From Macrostomum lignano (taxonomy: Eukaryota): 22,469 bases of DNA. Made by a program: the position numbers and the translations under genes. Below the pieces are notes generated by a model. That model was not told the DNA's origin, ran no database searches, and worked only from the letters and a program-made list of their open reading frames with translations. This document shows positions 1 through 22,425 of the stretch, piece after piece (position 1 is the stretch's first letter; each line of letters begins with the position of its first letter). The stretch lies in NCBI GenBank assembly GCA_002269645.1, contig NIVC01002217.1, positions 169,146-191,614 on the forward strand, in the 5' to 3' direction.

Positions 1-3000
1 TCTCAGCCTGGCCGCGCTGACCTCCATCGCTCGGCTGGACGCCTGGGGAGCCGCCAACATCCTGGTGCTCGGAGCCCCACAGCCGGGCTGACGGGGCTGC
101 ACTGTGCCGCCGCCTCTGCGGGACGTCTTCCCCCACTGCGGCAGGGACGGCGTCACGGTAAGGAGGAAGTGATCGTGTGTTAGTTGGGATTCTGATCCCA
201 GATTAGTGGGATTCTGATCCCAGATTAGTAGGGATTCTGATCCCAGATTAGTAGGATTCTGATCCAGATTAGTAGGGATTCTAATCCCAGATTAGTGAGG
301 ATTCTGATCCCAGATTAGTAGGGATTCTAATCCCGGATTAGTGGGATTCTAATCCCAGATTAGTGAGGATTCTAATCCCAGATTAGTAGGATTCTAATCC
401 CAGATTAGTGAGGATTCTAATCCCAGATTAGTGAGGATTCTGATCCCAGATTAGTAGGGATTCTAATCCTAGATTAGTAGGATTCTAATCCCAGATTAGT
501 GGGATTCTAATCCCAGATTAGTGAGGATTCTAATCCCAGATTATTGAGGATTCTAATCCCAGATTATTGAGGATTCTAATCCCAGATTATTGAGGATTCT
601 AATCCCAGATTAGTGGGGATTCTAATCCAGATTAGTGGGGATTCTAATCCCAGATTAGTAGGGATTCTAATCCCAGATTATTAAGGATTCTAATCCCAGA
701 TTATTGAGGATTCTAATCCCAGATTAGTGGGGATTCTAATCCCAGATTAGTTGGGATTCTAATCCAGATTAGTGGGGATTCTAATCCCAGATTGGTGAGG
801 ATTCTGATCCAGATTAGTAGGGATTCTTATCCCAGATTAGTAGGGATTCTTATCCCAGATTAGTGAGGATTCTGATCCCAGATTAGTAGGATTCTAATCC
901 CAGATTAGTAGGGATTCTAATCCCAGATTATTAAGGATTCTAATCCCAGATTAGTAAGGATTCTGATCCCAGATTAGTGGGGATTTTGATCCCAGATTAG
1001 TGAGGATTCTGATTTCATATAAGTGGGGATTCTGATCCCAGATTAGTAGGATTCGGATCCCATATTAATTTGGATTATGATCTAATGACTTCTCAATTTA
1101 CGCAGGATTAGACTAATGACTGTTTACATCAACTAGTCTATTAGTTTAATAATCAGCACAACTAGTCCAACTTTAACCACTTGCTCGCATTTCCAGAGCA
1201 TAGAAATGCGATTCACGGAGGCTCTGTTAGCCGTGTCTGAAGCGTACAAAAACTTGACAAGCGCATCGGCTGCGGTGACCTTCAGTGAAAGCAACTCCAG
1301 CTGCAACCCGCTGCAGCCATGGACCAGCGGGGGATCAGTGGCCCGCTTCATCAAGTCGGTAAGTATTGGGGATGGGGAAAATAGGGATAAAATGCTGTAA
1401 TAATGTCTTATAAGGCTTGACTGTTGACTCTAGGGCCAAATCGTATTTAATAGCAGGTGGAAAGCTAATCTATAGACCACTGATTGCTAGTCTATAGACC
1501 AATGGATTGCTAATCTATAGACCAATGGATTGCTAATCTATAGACCACTGGATTGCTAATCTATAGACCAATGATTGCTAATCTATAGATCAATGGATTG
1601 CTAATCTATAGACCAATGGATTGCTAACCTATAGAATAATTCATTGCTAATCTATAGACCAATGGATTGCTAACCTATAGAATAATTCATTGCTAATCTA
1701 TAGACTAATGGATTGCTGATCTATAGACCAATGGATTGCTAATCTATAGACAATGATTGCTAATCTATAGACTAATTGATTGCTAATCTATAGACTAATT
1801 GATTGCTAATCTATAGACCAATGGATTGCTAATCTATAGACCAATGGATTGCTAATCTATAGACTATGGATTGCTAATCTATAGACCAATGATTGCTAAT
1901 CTATAGACTAATTCATTGCTAATCTATAGACTAATTGATTGCTAATCTATAGACTAATTGATTGCTAATCTATAGACTAATTGATTGCTAATCTATAGAC
2001 TAATGATTGCTAATCTATAGACCAATGGATTGCTAATCTATAGACCAATGGATTGCTAATCTATAGACCAATGGATTGCTAATCTATAGATCAATGGATT
2101 GCTAATCTATAGATCAATGGATTGCTAATCTATAGATCAATGGATTGCTAATCTATAGACCAATGGATTGCTAATCTATAGATCAATGGATTGCTAACTA
2201 TAGACTAATTCATTGCTAATCTATGACTAATGGATTGCTATCTATAGACAATGGATTGCTATCTATAGACCAATGGATTGCTAACCTATAGACTAATTCA
2301 TTGCTAATCTATAGACCAATGGATTGCTAATCTAAAACGCGTCATCCGCAGCTGCAAGGCCTGGACACCTTCCGCTCGGTGATCAGCTACAACGCCAGCT
2401 CGAACCGTCTCGAGGCTCCCTACGTTGAGTTCGCGGCCACCTTCAACGAGCTGGCCGATCAGCCAGTCGAATTTGTAGAGAGCGCCCGGTTCTACCCAGC
2501 CAACGCCAGCCTGCGAGTGCTTCGGACAGTGTCCGGCCGGAGTCTCGTCTTCTCCAACGCCTTTGTGGACTTCAAGAATCGGACTCTGACCGTTTGTGCA
2601 CCGATTGTGAGTGACTGGAATGCAGCCATGGATACCTGACTATTAATGCTCATGAATTGCTCATAAAAACAGAAATTAAACCAGCAATCGGCACCAACCC
2701 CCGTTGGAAAGCCAAAGAAGAATGGGATATTTTTTGAATAAACTAAAAATAGCTTTTGAACTTTCAGCCTTGACATCTCAGCAATTCCCCTCGACATAGA
2801 AATTAATCTCTGATCGATGGCACTAAATTTACAGACCATGAATACAGTCTATGGATTGCTAATCTATAGCCCATCGATTGCTAATCTATAGTTAATTGAT
2901 TGCCAATCTGTATCTTATGGATTGCTAATCTATAGTTAATTGATTGCCAATCTGTATCTTATGGATTGCTAATCTATAGTTAATTGATTGCCAATCTGTA

Positions 3001-6000
3001 TCTTATGGATTGCTAATCTATAGTTAATTGATTGCCAATCTGTATCTTATGGATTGCTAATCTATAGTTAATTGATTGCCAATCTGTATCTTATGGATTG
3101 CTAATCTATAGTTAATTGATTGCCAATCTGTATCTTATGGATTGCTAATCTATAGTTAATTGATTGCCAATCTGTATCTTATGGATTGCTAATCTATAGT
3201 TAATTGATTGCCAATCTGTATCTTATGGATGCTAATCTATAGCATTGATATGTAGACATGCAGAACTGAGACTGGACTTCTCCAAACGTGAATAGATCCT
3301 CATCATTCCAGATCCCGCCGTTCACGGAGTACACGAATGTCAACGATGACCTGACCGGCAATGTCACCGGCGAGATCGCCGAATGGTTTAAAATATTCGA
3401 GCCGAAGCTGAAGTTTCGGTACGCCTGGCGGGTTGGAATTTCTAAGAAAATGATTCGTACTAGCGAATGACAATGCTGCACATAGTGCCGCCACCGACCG
3501 TTCCAGATCGATTTTCAGGCAGGCGCCGGACCGCCAGTTCGGTGCCCCGATTCCCGGCTCAGACTTTTTCAGCGGCTGCATTGGCGAAGTTCAGAAAGGG
3601 TGGGTGAGCAGCTGCTGGAACAGTTTAGGATGAAGTGATGAGATGAGACGTTTGAGGAAGGGTAAAGTGAATGGAGATGAGGGCGAATTGCTGCGAGGTA
3701 AAAATCTTTTTTGGTAAGAGATAGTACAAAATGGTTGGGGATAAGAGCGCAGTGATTGGAGATAAGAGCGCAGTGATTATAGATAAGAGCACAGAGTGAT
3801 TATAAATATAGATAGATAAGGGCGGAGTGGTTAGAGATAAGGCGGAGTGGTTGGAGATAAGGGTGGAGTGGTTAGAGATAAGGGCGGAGTGGTTAGAGAT
3901 AAGGGCGGAGTGGTTAGAGATAAGGGCGGAGTGGTTAGAGATAAGGGCGGAGTGGTTAGAGATAAGGGCGGAGTGGTTAGAGATAAGGGTGGAGTGGTTA
4001 GAGATAAGGGCGGAGTGGTTAGTGATAAGGGTGGAGTGGTTAGAGATAAGGGTGGAGTGGTTAGAGATAAGGACGGAGTGGTTAGTGATAAGGGCGGAGT
4101 GGTTGGAGATAAGGGCGGAGTGGTTAGAGATAAGGGCGGAGTGGTTAGAGATAAGGCGGAGTGGTTAGAGATAAGGGCGGAGTGGTTAGAGATAAGGGCG
4201 GAGTGGTTAGAGATAAGGGTGGAGTGGTTAGAGATAAGGGCGGAGTGGTTAGTGATAAGGGTGGAGTGGTTAGAGATAAGGGTGGAGTGGTTAGAGATAA
4301 GGACGGAGTGGTTAGTGATAAGGGCGGAGTGGTTGGAGATAAGGGCGGAGTGGTTAGAGATAAGGACGGAGTGGTTAGAGATAAGGACGGAGTGGTTAGT
4401 GATAAGGGCGGAGTGGTTAGTGATAAGGGCGGAGTGGTTAGAGATAAGGGTGGAGTGGTTAGAGATAAGGGTGGAGTGGTTAGAGATAAGGGCGGAGTGG
4501 TTAGTGATAAGGGTGGAGTGGTTAGAGATAAGGTTGGAGTGGTTAGAGATAAGGACGGAGTGGTTAGAGATAAGGGCGGAGTGGTTAGAGATAAGGGCGG
4601 AGTGGTTAGTGATAAGGGCGGAGTGGTTAGTGATAAGGGCGGAGTGGTTAGAGATAAGGGTGGAGTGGTTAGAGATAAGGGCGGAGTGGTTAGAGATAAG
4701 GGCGGAGTGGTTGGAGATAAGGGTGGAGTGGTTAGTGATAAGGGCGGAGTGGTTAGTGATAAGGGCGGAGTGGTTGGAGATAAGGGTGGAGTGGTTAGAG
4801 ATAAGGACGGAGTGGTTAGAGATAAGGACGGAGTGGTTAGAGATAAGGGCGGAGTGGTTAGAGATAAGGACGGAGTGGTTAGTGATAAGGGCGGAGTGGT
4901 TAGTGATAAGGGCGGAGTGGTTAGAGATAAGGACGGAGTGGTTAGAACTGAATGCCGCAAATCGATCCGCTCCTTCCCGCAGAACGCGCACCTGTCGATG
5001 CCGTACGCAATCACCACACTGCGCAGTCAGGTTGTGGACTTTTCCTTCCCCCTGGCCTCATCCGGCAATACCATCTTGGTGCGCCGGCCGCCGCCCTCAA
5101 CCCGGATGTGGAACATTTTCGCTCCACTCAGCTACGACGTGTGGCTGCTGCTGCTCGGTGTCCTGTGCACCGCTGCCTTCTTCACTTACCTGCTCGCCTA
5201 CTTCAGCCCGTTCACCGCCTGGAATCTAGGAGTAAACTACTCGTTTGCGGACGAGGTCTGGCTTCAAGAGTACATCTGGTCCTTTCTTGGCAGCCTTTTG
5301 CAGCAGGGCCAGGATTTCTATCCGTTCGCGATGAGCCCGAGAAGCATTTTGGCGTTCTGGTGGTTTCTCACCGTCATTTTGCTTGCCGCGTACACAGGTG
5401 TGATTCGCTTATATCTACTACTTACAGTAGTGCAGATGAGAAGATTTCATAATGAGTAGAATAGAATAAAATAGAACAGAATCGAATCGAACAGACCTCG
5501 TCACCATTGCAGGAAACCTGACCGCCTACCTGACCGTGTCCGTGACGCAGCTTCCAATCAGAACCCTGGAAGATGTGCTCGCCAACCAGCACTACAAAGT
5601 CCTGGTCTCCAAGGGAACCAACATATACGCGCAAATCCTGCTCGACACGTCCGGGCCCTATTATGAGCTGAGAAAGCAGATGAAGGTTGTGGACTCCATG
5701 CCGATCTGCTCCCAGACCGTGAGCCGATGTCCCAATGGCTGCTTTTCAATGCAGAAGTCTGTAACACATCTAACACTAGCGCACCTAACACATTACTCTG
5801 CATTGAAGGTAGCCGTGGATTCGAACCCCTACCAGGTGTGCATCGTGGACCAGAACATCAATATTCACTTCTACAACGCCTACTGCAACAAAGTGTACAT
5901 CGCCGACCAGACGTTCAACGCCTACTCGCTTGGAGTCGCCTTTCCTAAGGGCGCCTTTTACCTGCCTGCCTTCAGCTTCCTGTGAGCCCCAACGCTGGCC

Positions 6001-7074
6001 TCATCCTTACCTTTTACTCCAGCTTTCTGCCACTCACTCCCTGTCACTCCCTGTCACTCCCTGTCACTCCCTGTCACTCCCTGTCACTCCCTGTCACCCC
6101 CTGTCACTCCCTGTCACTCCTTGTCACTCCCTGTCACTCCCTGTCACTCCCTGTCACTCCCTGTCACTCCATATCACTCCCTGTCACTCCCTATCACTCC
6201 CTGTCACTACATGTCGCTTCCTGTCACTCCCTGTCACTCCATATCACTCCCTGTCACTCCCTGTCACTCACTGTCACTCCCTGTCACTCCCTGTTACTCC
6301 GTCACTCCTTGTTACTCCCTGTCACTCCCTGTTACTCCCTGTCATTCCCTGTCACTCCCTGTTACTCCCTGTCACTCCCTGTCACTCCCTGTTACTCCCT
6401 GTCACTCCCTGTCACTCCATATCACTCCCTGTCACTACATGTCGCTTCCTGTCATTCCCTGTCACTCCCTGTCACTCTCTGTCACTCCCTGTCATTCCCT
6501 GTCACTCCCTGTCACTCCCTGTTACTCCGTCACTCCCTGTTACTCCCTGTCACTCCCTGTCACTCCCTGTCATTCCCTGTCACTCCCTGTTACTCCCTGT
6601 CACTCCCTGTCACTCCCTGCCACTCCCTGCCACTCCCTGCCACTCCCTGCCACTCCCTGTCACTCCCTGTCACTCCCTGTCACTCCCTGTCACTCCCTGC
6701 CACTCCCCGTCACTCCCTGCTGTTCCCTGCCACTCCCTGTCACTCTGCCGCTCTCTGCCGCTCTTTACCCTTCTCCACTACCATTCTCAGACTTTCGCAC
6801 TGACTTCCTTAATTATCCAAACCCCCGCAGTCTGGAAAAGTCGCAGGACTCCGGCCTGAGCCAGTGGCTCGAGTACAAATACTTCCCGCGCTCGAACGCC
6901 GAGTGCGTAGTGTCAGCCGTCACGGCCGAGGCCGACCCCATCACCATCGAGGGCGTCGCTGGAGCTTTCATCGTCACAGGCGGGCTGTACGTCTGCGGCA
7001 TTCTGCTTCTGCTGCTGGAGCTGCTGTGGACCTTTTGCTGTAAACAGTCTCCTAATAGGCTGCCTTGCTACTGA
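1..7074 (+). CDS. Divergent ionotropic glutamate receptor-like gene, paralog 1 (5'-truncated by window). Exons: <1-157, 1197-1358, 2352-2606, 3312-3418, 3507-3603, 4983-5397, 5513-5718, 5809-5981, 6831-7074
   Basis: Manual splice model: all introns GT-AG with compatible phases, and exon sizes nearly all match paralog 2 (255, 107, 415, 206, 173, 244 nt). Motifs: CNPLQPW (ATD), IPPF, GCIGEVQKG, YAITTLRSQVVDFS (S1), WSFLGSLLQQGQD (M2), AYTGNLTAYLT (M3), YCN and AEC (S2 Cys pair), M4, TGA at 7072-7074. The first visible exon has an in-frame TGA at 89-91, apparently from paired indels, so it may be a pseudogene or an assembly error. Confidence 0.85.
184..1070. repeat. Minisatellite, 22-23 bp unit GGGATTCTAATCCCAGATTAGT(A/G), about 39 copies (paralog 1 intron)
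   Basis: Direct tandem periodicity. Confidence 0.95.
1464..2335. repeat. Minisatellite, 22-23 bp unit ACCAATGGATTGCTAATCTATAG, about 38 copies
   Basis: Direct tandem periodicity. Confidence 0.95.
2846..3245. repeat. 44 bp higher-order (dimeric) repeat ATGGATTGCTAATCTATAGTTAATTGATTGCCAATCTGTATCTT, about 8 copies
   Basis: ATGG recurs at 2917, 2961, 3005, 3049, 3093, 3137, 3181. Confidence 0.95.
3735..4946. repeat. Minisatellite, 21 bp unit GAGTGGTTAGAGATAAGGGCG, about 54 copies plus a degenerate 5' flank
   Basis: Tandem periodicity; explains the WLEIRAE/VVRDKGG/ISNHSAL pseudo-ORFs. Confidence 0.95.
6030..6745. repeat. Minisatellite, 10 bp unit CTCCCTGTCA, about 70 copies
   Basis: Tandem periodicity; explains the PVTPCHSLSL pseudo-ORFs. 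Confidence 0.95.

Positions 7075-8525: not shown

Positions 8526-18138
<9,613 letters not shown>

Positions 18139-18185
<47 letters not shown>
18139..18185. repeat. (AG)n microsatellite starting within and after the paralog 2 stop codon
   Basis: Directly visible. Confidence 0.95.
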
Positions 18186-20795: not shown

Positions 20796-21059
20796 AAGTT
20801 CATGTTTGAGGCAGCTTGAGTCATAGAGAATTCAGGATATTGACAGTTTTTCATCGACAGCATCACGCTTTACGACTCGCGATCCACAAAGCATAAAATT
20901 CACCTTCTTACAGAGCGGCATTGGAATGCAAAATTTCGCAGGGTGATGCAAAGCAAATTGAAAAACACGGTAACAGGGACTGGACAGCCAGTCAGACCCG
21001 GCACGATGTGCCTCGCAGAGACGAGCCAATCATTGGCGCCGCGGATTCCCTCGCCACCA

Positions 21060-21719
21060 TCAGGTACAGAACTCCGCCTTCGAGACCTCCTGGATTGTCA
21101 GCGTCGTGACGTCGACGGCCGCCGACCAGCGCCTCCGCTGACGAAGCCAAACCGGTGCGTCGGCGCCGCCGTTGGCTTCGCTGGGGTGGCTCCGCGGCCG
21201 CGCGGCTCTTCGACTCGCGCTGCGGCACCGGCAGCTCAGGATTCTGCCGGCCTGGCGCAGGAACTTCCTGTTGGTCAGGGCGATGAGGGCCAGGTTGCAG
21301 TAGGAGTCCGCCAGTACCAGCAGGTTGCCGAGCAGTCTGGTCAGCACCACGCGCTGGTCTCCTCGCGTTGATGTCCAGCACGGCCAGGGTGGCCGTCGGC
21401 AGCTCGCAGGCGGCGAAGGCGATGGCAACAAGTAGGACTCGCCGGCGGCGCGTCTCGACAGCCGGTCGCTCGGCGTCGACGCTGGCTGCGTGGCGCGGCA
21501 TCGGCGCGCGTCGCTGACTGACCAGGCCTGCGGGCTGCGGCGCAGGAACACGAGGTGGACGGCGATGATCAGCGAGAGGCAGCAGCGCCAGACCGGCCGG
21601 TAGGGGACCCTGCAGTGCGAAGACGATTGTGTGCACCAGGGCGTGGTTGGCCGACAGCGCCGGGCGTAGGCGGGTAGAGCGTCGGCGGTCACGTAGTCGC
21701 TGATGTTCTCGCTGAGAAG
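21060..21719 (-). CDS. Last exon (TM5-TM7 and C-tail) of a class A peptide-receptor-like GPCR (FMRFamide/myosuppressin/Srw-like), frameshifted; upstream exons lie beyond the window
   Basis: Acceptor aaaatcgcag|CTT at 21719. Mosaic of two frames gives LLSENISDY...LSANHALVHTIVFALQGPLPAGLAL/CLSLIIAVHLVFLRR (TM5), RRRRVLLVAIAFAACELPTATLAVL (TM6, CELP motif) and LLGNLLVLADSYCNLALIALTNRKF (TM7/H8); stop TGA at 21062-21060. At least four frame switches are needed, so this is a pseudogene or has consensus indel errors. Confidence 0.72.
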   Translation of the reverse strand, partial: LLSENISDYVTADALPAYARRCRPTTPWCTQSSSHCRVPYRPVWRCCLSLIIAVHLVFLRRSPQAWSVSDARRCRATQPASTPSDRLSRRAAGESYLLPSPSPPASCRRPPWPCWTSTRGDQRVVLTRLLGNLLVLADSYCNLALIALTNRKFLRQAGRILSCRCRSASRRAARPRSHPSEANGGADAPVWLRQRRRWSAAVDVTTLTIQEVSKAEFCT

Positions 21720-21837
21720 CTGCGATTTTGGCAGTGGGGGTAGCGGCAGTGCGTGTGCTATTGGTGTGCGTCTGTGTTGCCGTGTCTATGTAGACTTTTC
21801 ATTTACGAAAGTTGATCACTGAGCATGTATTTCTGAA

Positions 21838-22425
21838 GGGAGTGAGGTGGTTGGGCAAGGAGCGAGGTGGTTGGCAGGAGTGAGGTGGTTGGGCAGGGAG
21901 TGAGGTGGTTGGGCAGGGGTGAGGTGGTTGGGCAGGGGGTGAGGTGGTTGGGCAGGGAGTGAGGTGGCTGGGCAGGGAGTGAGGTGGCTGGGCAGGGAGT
22001 GAGGTGGTTGGGCAGGAAGTGATGGTGGGCAGGGGGTGAGGTGGTTGGGCAGGGAGTGAGGTGGTTGAGCAGAGTGAGGTGGTTGGGCAGGGAGTGAGGT
22101 GGCTGGGCAGGAAGTGAGGTGGTTGGGCAGGGAGTGAGGTGGTTGGCAGGAATGAGGTGGCTGGCAGGGGGTGAGGTGGTTGGGCAGGGAGTGAGGTGGT
22201 TGAGCAGGGAGTGAGGTGGTTGGCAGGGAGTGAGGTGGTGGGCAGGGGTGAGGTGGCTGGGCAGGAAGTGATGGCTGGGCAGGGGTGAGGTGGCTGGGCG
22301 GGGTGAGGTGGTTGGGCAGGGGAGGTGGTGGGCAGGGAGTGAGGTGTTGGCAGGGAGTGAGGTGGTTGGGCAGAAGTGAGGTGGCTGGGCAGGGGGTGAG
22401 GTGGCTGAGGGGGGTGAGGTGGCTT
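21838..22425. repeat. G-rich minisatellite, ~20 bp unit GGGAGTGAGGTGGTTGGGCA, about 29 copies (in the GPCR intron)
   Basis: Tandem periodicity. Confidence 0.93.

Follow-up and report, generated by a model that had tools for sequence, protein, structure and literature searches.

How does one exon come to be almost identical, silent sites included, in two genes whose other exons agree at only about two-thirds of their nucleotides? The question is raised by a 22,469-nt stretch of Macrostomum lignano DNA (NCBI GenBank assembly GCA_002269645.1, contig NIVC01002217.1, positions 169,146 to 191,614 of the forward strand), hereafter called the window and numbered from its first letter. The window contains two tandem, same-strand (+) paralogs of the ionotropic glutamate receptor (iGluR) family, termed A and B, and the exon in question, termed e0, occurs once in each. 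Our analysis makes it very likely that a 261–268-bp segment, made up mostly of e0, has been homogenised between A and B by DNA-templated non-allelic (interlocus) gene conversion.

Near-identity of one exon in two old duplicates

Comparison of the two halves of the window yielded four non-repetitive similarities, three of 70–73% identity and one of 98% (2335–2602 versus 13148–13415), and tblastx of the window against itself gave further collinear coding matches between the halves. In a repeat search of the window, the 98% match is a single two-copy direct repeat with 263 of 268 positions identical and a spacing of 10813. The two tracts thus lie 10813 bp apart on the + strand, in the same exon and the same phase. 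In register, mismatches occur at 2338 and 2341 (intron) and at 2356, 2471 and 2498 (exon), with no others; the private bases in the exon are A/G at 2356, A/C at 2471 and A/G at 2498. Within e0, A and B match at 248 of 251 positions (2352–2602), after which the last four nucleotides (2603–2606) all differ (GATT versus TTCA).

The gene models of A and B share identical intron positions and phases, with AG/GT at all junctions and the reading frame kept throughout. In the product of B, Pfam places PF01094 (ANF_receptor) at residues 64–346, PF10613 (Lig_chan-Glu_bd) at 429–539 and PF00060 (Lig_chan) at 554–819, so that the protein has the amino-terminal domain (ATD), the bipartite ligand-binding domain (LBD) and the channel domain with pore loop and M3 gate motif that define an iGluR. 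Among proteins of solved structure, kainate and AMPA receptors are its best relatives, the top match being GluK2 (E = 8e-35, residues 47–834). Like AMPA, kainate and delta receptors (GluK2, PDB 8f0o), A and B have the full arrangement of ATD, LBD and transmembrane domain, the QQG pore-loop motif and the M3 motif SYTGNLTAYLTV; unlike the solved vertebrate receptors (E ~1e-35), they belong to an expanded family specific to the M. lignano lineage.

Outside e0, A and B are old duplicates, both under purifying selection (dN/dS = 0.29/1.27, the non-synonymous and synonymous divergences for the seven other shared exons, pooled). By the Nei–Gojobori method, dS in these seven exons ranges from 0.69 to saturated and nucleotide identity from 57 to 77%; the corresponding values for e0 are a dS of 0.04, a dN of 0.02 and an identity of 97%. 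The exons that adjoin e0 agree at 23 of 53 (43%) and 20 of 35 (57%) amino acids. Given a background mismatch rate of 0.33, the probability of three or fewer mismatches in 251 nt is 8e-39, and in 2000 codon-column shuffles the maximum per 251-nt window was 220 matches, against 248 observed. Third positions mismatch at 4 of 85 sites in e0, compared to a background of 0.49 (P = 2e-19). Where the amino acids are identical, so are the codons in 80 of 82 cases in e0 and in 153 of 267 elsewhere (Fisher P = 3e-14). The near-identity of e0 between the otherwise diverged A and B is therefore real.

Exon e0 encodes the last ~50 residues of the ATD, the ATD–LBD linker and the first S1 strand. In B it covers residues 352–436, which align to GluK2 366–439, between the end of ANF_receptor (346) and the start of Lig_chan-Glu_bd (429). 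An earlier, sequence-only reading had placed the exon at the end of the ATD and in the ATD–S1 linker, and these two lines of evidence bear it out. That reading had also reported three mismatches in the first 251 nt, a diverged 4-nt end, a shared splice acceptor (here TCATCCGCAG) and neighbouring exons with ~43% and ~58% amino acid identity, all of which we recovered.

Alternatives: selection on the protein or on the nucleotides

Strong constraint on the encoded peptide was tried as a cause of the identity and rejected: in other paralog pairs of the family, e0 shows 32–56% amino acid identity, no better than other exons. The most conserved exon among the pairs compared is the channel exon, e3.

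A second alternative places extreme purifying selection on the nucleotides themselves, through an RNA element, an antisense gene or a regulatory element, without any exchange between the genes. We give this next to no credence. Nothing specific speaks for it, although an antisense open reading frame (ORF; 2492–2839, 115 aa) overlaps part of e0 in A. This ORF extends into the unique intron of A, which has no detectable similarity to the B flank, and no antisense ORF of at least 60 aa overlaps e0 of B. Moreover, e0 varies freely among the other paralogs and A-like copies. We know of no coding exon in which 248 of 251 nt are conserved while dS exceeds 1 elsewhere in the gene, and we count this lack of precedent against the explanation. 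A search of the window against Rfam matched no family, and the predicted fold of the tract showed no excess of structure over shuffled sequence (z = -0.06).

Tract boundaries and the nature of the template

Identity is certain from 2342 onward, and positions 2335–2341 match at five of seven. The tract thus measures 261–268 bp and consists of the last 10–17 nt of the upstream intron plus e0 minus its final 4 nt. Beyond it, matches are at chance level (11 of 35 upstream, 11 of 58 downstream), with the drop completed within 1–7 nt at both ends; Smith–Waterman alignment, which allows indels, found no flank homology on either side. Past 2602, the four differing bases are followed by unrelated unique intron in A and B. 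At the 5' side, the pairing region begins at 2335 because the unique sequence of A begins where a minisatellite array ends. The limits of the tract are set by the extent of homology, not by splice sites as such.

Could the tract have been copied from a spliced transcript? In this explanation, RNA- or cDNA-templated repair would have used the spliced transcript of one paralog, producing limits shaped by the exon. The tract is indeed roughly exon-sized, and its 3' end lies within 4 nt of the splice donor. However, the identity extends 10 nt or more into the upstream intron. The acceptor TCATCCGCAG is shared by A and B at 10 of 10 positions and the last 17 intron nucleotides (–17 to –1) at 15, compared to 4–8 of 10 and 7–13 of 17 for the other seven acceptors. 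Positions –10 to –4 match at seven of seven (P ~0.001, judged from those other acceptors). A spliced template should also have carried sequence of the neighbouring exons, which are only 43 and 57% identical in amino acids, and at the 3' side the identity gives out 4 nt before the exon–intron junction is reached. Limits exactly at splice junctions without shared intron, the pattern expected of a spliced template, are not what we see. Because intron sequence is shared by A and B, an RNA or cDNA template is disfavoured, contrary to what the sequence-only reading had allowed, and we regard it as highly improbable. The same reading had called the tract exon-limited, which holds approximately: the tract takes in 10–17 nt of upstream intron and stops 4 nt before the exon ends.

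Among the unconverted acceptors, that of the last exon (6814–6830 versus 17880–17896) is the most similar, with 13 of 17 positions identical against 7–8 of 17 for the others. It lies in a region that tblastx aligns as YPNPRS/YPKPRR.

Assembly and public gene models

The flatworm M. lignano is a neopolyploid rich in repeats (PMC5704211, PMC10733133), and its genome is hard to assemble (PMC10733133). Reads of one paralog might therefore have been used to correct the other, or the contig might be chimeric, and the frameshifts that fill the public gene models of the locus do nothing to allay this concern. Several observations nonetheless make an assembly or polishing artefact very unlikely. A long-read chimera would not take the form of 268 bp of identity set between unrelated flanks, and short reads would not mis-map onto a copy that is ~33% diverged. 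In addition, three private differences are kept, and separate UniProt models reproduce the private residues: P0009 and P0012 have the A type (Q2/E40/...API), and P0001 has the B type (R2/D40/...APS), so that together they contain both versions of e0. P0009 corresponds to the N-terminal part of A, and P0001 is a mis-fusion of the C-terminal exons of A and the N-terminal exons of B. Both match the window exactly in shared exons save for two residues in exon 1 of B, where the source sequence of P0001 differs from the window.

The closest database relatives of A and B are M. lignano proteins only, and the nearest other family members found, all from this species, are 41–50% identical to A or B. 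Two additional A-like copies, P0016 and P0017, have the same e0 type and vary in this exon. A protein search with the e0 peptide returned two fragmentary models only, and cluster look-ups added no members. Protein searches revealed no second B-like copy, and no contigs encoding P0009, P0001, P0017 or the three window ORFs that cover e0 are on record. A distant paralog, P0002, maps to locus L001 (NCBI GCA_002269645.1), without a tandem partner and without similarity to e0. The UniProt models P0001, P0007 and P0012–P0017 are either mis-fused across neighbouring genes or full of frameshifts, and models of this set bear unrelated automatic names (Integron gene cassette protein, TonB_dep_Rec, VWFA, ATP-grasp, protein kinase).

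Probable gene conversion between the paralogs

The data show directly how the identity is distributed, where it ends and how the two genes are built, and that good alternatives are lacking. The pattern is the one expected of gene conversion: divergence is much lower than elsewhere, synonymous sites included, the edges are discrete, and the two copies lie close together, at homologous positions and in the same orientation. Conversion tracts usually range from tens of base pairs to about 1000 bp. The sequence-only reading had proposed a recent non-allelic tract of ~265 bp acting across ~10.8 kb, and our measurements (261–268 bp, offset 10813, dS 0.04 versus 1.27) support it.

As to mechanism, we infer that a break in one copy would have been repaired, without crossover, from the paralogous exon 10.8 kb away. 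The tract would be held to about one exon because A and B no longer pair elsewhere, the introns being unrelated and filled with different minisatellites; e0 would be the sole place where pairing is still possible. The 261–268 bp found here agree with the tracts of other systems, whose mean length is estimated at ~250 bp; conversion there becomes less frequent with growing divergence of the copies (bioRxiv 10.1101/135152), until it slows and stops (10.1101/135152; PMC3924837). Tracts also occur mostly in exons, introns losing homology faster (PMC3966223 section 4.2).

Several points weigh against gene conversion here, or against details of it. GC content at third codon positions (GC3) in the tract is not raised (0.75–0.77 versus 0.66–0.81 elsewhere), and thus there is no footprint of GC-biased conversion. 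Conversion normally requires high similarity, and the remaining exons of A and B are only ~67% identical. A long-lived island of 268 bp is also near the minimum length thought to allow efficient pairing. Phylogenetic incongruence, donor and direction would be read from orthologous or homeologous DNA, and look-ups for such DNA gave no record. The evidence for the extra A-like copies comes solely from error-prone, frameshifted protein models, and the possibility of an assembly problem was weighed from the assembly and the protein models.

A persistent island or a single overwrite

DNA-templated conversion could have produced the tract in either of two ways. In the first, e0 would be a long-lived island kept alike by repeated conversion: this segment would never have escaped concerted evolution, while the other segments escaped at various times. 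In the second, the diverged e0 of one copy would have been replaced once, recently and without a long history of exchange, either through conversion that started from short conserved stretches or through template switching at microhomologies during replication or repair; a transfer from A to B fits this version best. We judge the island somewhat the likelier of the two, and take the single overwrite as a possible but doubtful reading.

The island is favoured because two copies must already be similar to recombine. Outside e0, A and B agree at only ~67% of nucleotides, and no perfect match there exceeds 28 nt. Had e0 diverged like its neighbours, there would have been no homology to prime or resolve a single exchange. 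The array in A ends at the 5' edge of the tract, a structural discontinuity; this is expected if homology ends there and would be a coincidence for a copy made from A to B. Heterogeneity of dS among the other exons fits an island as well. In favour of a single overwrite, synonymous sites in other exons are saturated, so concerted evolution has ended there, and both tract edges are sharp, with unrelated sequence beyond. The extra A-like copies share the e0 type, which fits an e0 that belonged to the A lineage from the start and passed from there to B.

Divergence along the ATD also bears on the number of exchanges. Exon x4 may be a second conversion tract: A and B share an unbroken run of 22 of 22 amino acids (PLLEAFQNDLSASGISVMAFQL) and ~83% of residues overall, compared to ~45–66% in neighbouring ATD exons. 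Such a tract would fit mosaic, multi-tract conversion, and the run suggests repeated exchange, which speaks against a single overwrite.

A short local peak of similarity lies in e3 (~5290–5340 versus ~15190–15240), at the pore-loop motif QQGQDFYPFAMSPR, where 28 nt match perfectly and A and B use the same codon at 13 of 15 places. Against a background codon identity of 57%, and with many windows tested, we found it unconvincing as a further tract in the window. The match is not significant alone and could reflect a tiny old tract or codon bias; among the other family members compared, the motif differs by no more than one or two substitutions.

The last homogenisation of e0 is recent, with 1.2% divergence accumulated since. 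At position 13 of the exon product, A and B have tyrosine, while the A-like copies P0016 and P0017 and the outgroup paralogs P0002 and P0003 have phenylalanine. Because A and B share the derived Y13, the last homogenisation would postdate the split from the extra A-like copy, which the frameshifted models suggest only weakly. Polarised in the same tentative manner by the A-like copies, R2Q in A and E40D in B look like private changes that arose afterwards. The post-conversion changes, two non-synonymous and one synonymous, are too few to infer selection.

We infer the recurrence and direction of conversion from similarly indirect signs. The shared e0 type of the A-like copies fits A as the donor, or old and recurrent exchange. 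Outgroup distances are uninformative about the donor, A and B being equally distant in e0 (both 38% to P0003).

Relation to known systems

The literature searched mentions neither this locus nor conversion in flatworm iGluRs. The A/B pair adds one more case to a process already well known, partial or mosaic interlocus gene conversion, and reveals no new mechanism. It resembles col-12/col-13, hsp16 and fog-2/ftr-1 of C. elegans (PMC3966223), in which diverged tandem duplicates share a short segment that is near-identical at silent sites too, as well as other partial or mosaic conversion in human duplicate families (bioRxiv 10.1101/135152) and at HMA4 of A. halleri (bioRxiv 10.1101/2025.10.29.685298). 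Common to these systems and to A and B are a tract of a few hundred bp, mostly confined to exons, and a mosaic of divergence along the gene. What sets A and B apart is the unusually extreme contrast (dS 0.04 versus >1, with a background identity of ~67%) and the coincidence of a tract edge with a minisatellite array.

The pattern is also like that of models in which regions escape singly from concerted evolution and leave a young-looking island (Teshima & Innan; PMC3924837; Harpak et al. 10.1101/135152). Most of that theory and data, however, deals with young duplicates that differ by a few percent, whereas the A/B island would outlive the saturation of the whole remaining gene.

Why might e0 have stayed identical? 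Neutral persistence is our default reading. The sequence-only reading had raised the idea that the exon is retained to keep an assembly interface compatible. In a fuller form, e0 would be a shared module maintained by selection, with repeated conversion keeping the ATD–LBD linker identical in two co-assembling subunits and the flanking minisatellites acting as break-prone triggers. We consider this unlikely. If true, it would make e0 an exon-scale island of concerted evolution that persists far past the usual point of escape.

Whichever version applies, the locus is a very clean natural case of a mosaic of old and young sequence made by conversion in one gene pair. Dating, orthology calls and selection scans on these flatworm receptor genes will be misled if e0 is included. 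That conversion can still act on ~260 bp after the surroundings have lost homology bears on the span and the locality of concerted evolution. For M. lignano genomics, near-identity of paralogs at the level of single exons comes on top of the redundancy of a neopolyploid genome, and both read mapping and gene models can be confused by it.

Features of the window

Coordinates of the two genes, the tract copies and the principal repeat arrays are collected in Table 1.

Table 1. Genes, exons, identity tracts and tandem arrays in the window
Feature	Position	Strand	Remarks
Gene A (iGluR), 3' part	1–7074	+	N-terminal ATD exons off the window; stop in last exon; Pfam Lig_chan-Glu_bd and Lig_chan; UniProt models P0001 and P0009 match
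Gene A exons	...–157, 1197–1358, 2352–2606, 3312–3418, 3507–3603, 4983–5397, 5513–5718, 5809–5981, 6831–7074 (stop)	+	
Identity tract, copy A	2335–2602	+	17 nt of intron tail plus first 251 nt of e0
Exon e0 of A	2352–2606	+	255 nt, phase 0-0, AG/GT; exact protein match to UniProt model P0009
Gene B (iGluR), complete	8526–18140	+	13 exons, 848 aa
Gene B exons 1–7	8526–8775, 9586–9726, 10014–10124, 10799–10977, 11197–11409, 12718–12876, 13165–13419	+	
Gene B exons 8–13	14492–14598, 14669–14762, 14880–15294, 15962–16167, 16554–16726, 17897–18140	+	
ATD exon x4 of B	10799–10977	+	Candidate second tract, older or shorter; compared with P0009 (x4 DNA of A off the window)
Identity tract, copy B	13148–13415	+	
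Exon e0 of B	13165–13419	+	255 nt, phase 0-0, AG/GT; residues 352–436; exact match to UniProt model P0001
23-nt minisatellite, 38 copies	1464–2334		Intron upstream of e0 of A; Tandem Repeats Finder (TRF); final base directly precedes identity tract
22/44-nt minisatellite	2854–3242		Downstream of e0 of A; TRF; 16-mer core GATTGCTAATCTATAG in common with upstream array
Example arrays	180–1067, 1464–2334, 3814–4946, 11487–12609, 13521–14432		TRF

Tandem repeats make up much of the non-coding sequence. Between 180 and 22422, TRF reported 16 distinct mini- and microsatellite arrays with units of 4–45 nt and up to 161 copies. They total ~9.6 kb (~43% of the window), are nearly all intronic, and differ between A and B. 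The two arrays around e0 of A (1464–2334 and 2854–3242) are one family, sharing the core GATTGCTAATCTATAG in the same orientation, with 42 matches where none is expected. A 519-bp unique block that includes e0 sits between them, and the arrays are possibly break-prone.

A 10-nt array (TCACTCCCTG; 6034–6745) in the last intron of A resembles the reverse complement of a 20-nt array (AGGGAGTGAGGTGGTTGGGC; 21837–22422) at the end of the window. As arms of an inverted repeat ~15 kb apart, the two are 70–81% complementary.

Two smaller observations concern coding sequence. Exon e2 of A has one extra codon (Trp) ahead of its donor relative to B, at 3601–3603, owing to a 3-nt shift of the usable GT. 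Downstream of B, a GC-rich block (20900–21700, 63–69% GC) contains long overlapping ORFs on both strands (142–214 aa) without a Pfam match; it may be where a neighbouring gene has its first exon or promoter region, or it may be a gene in decay.

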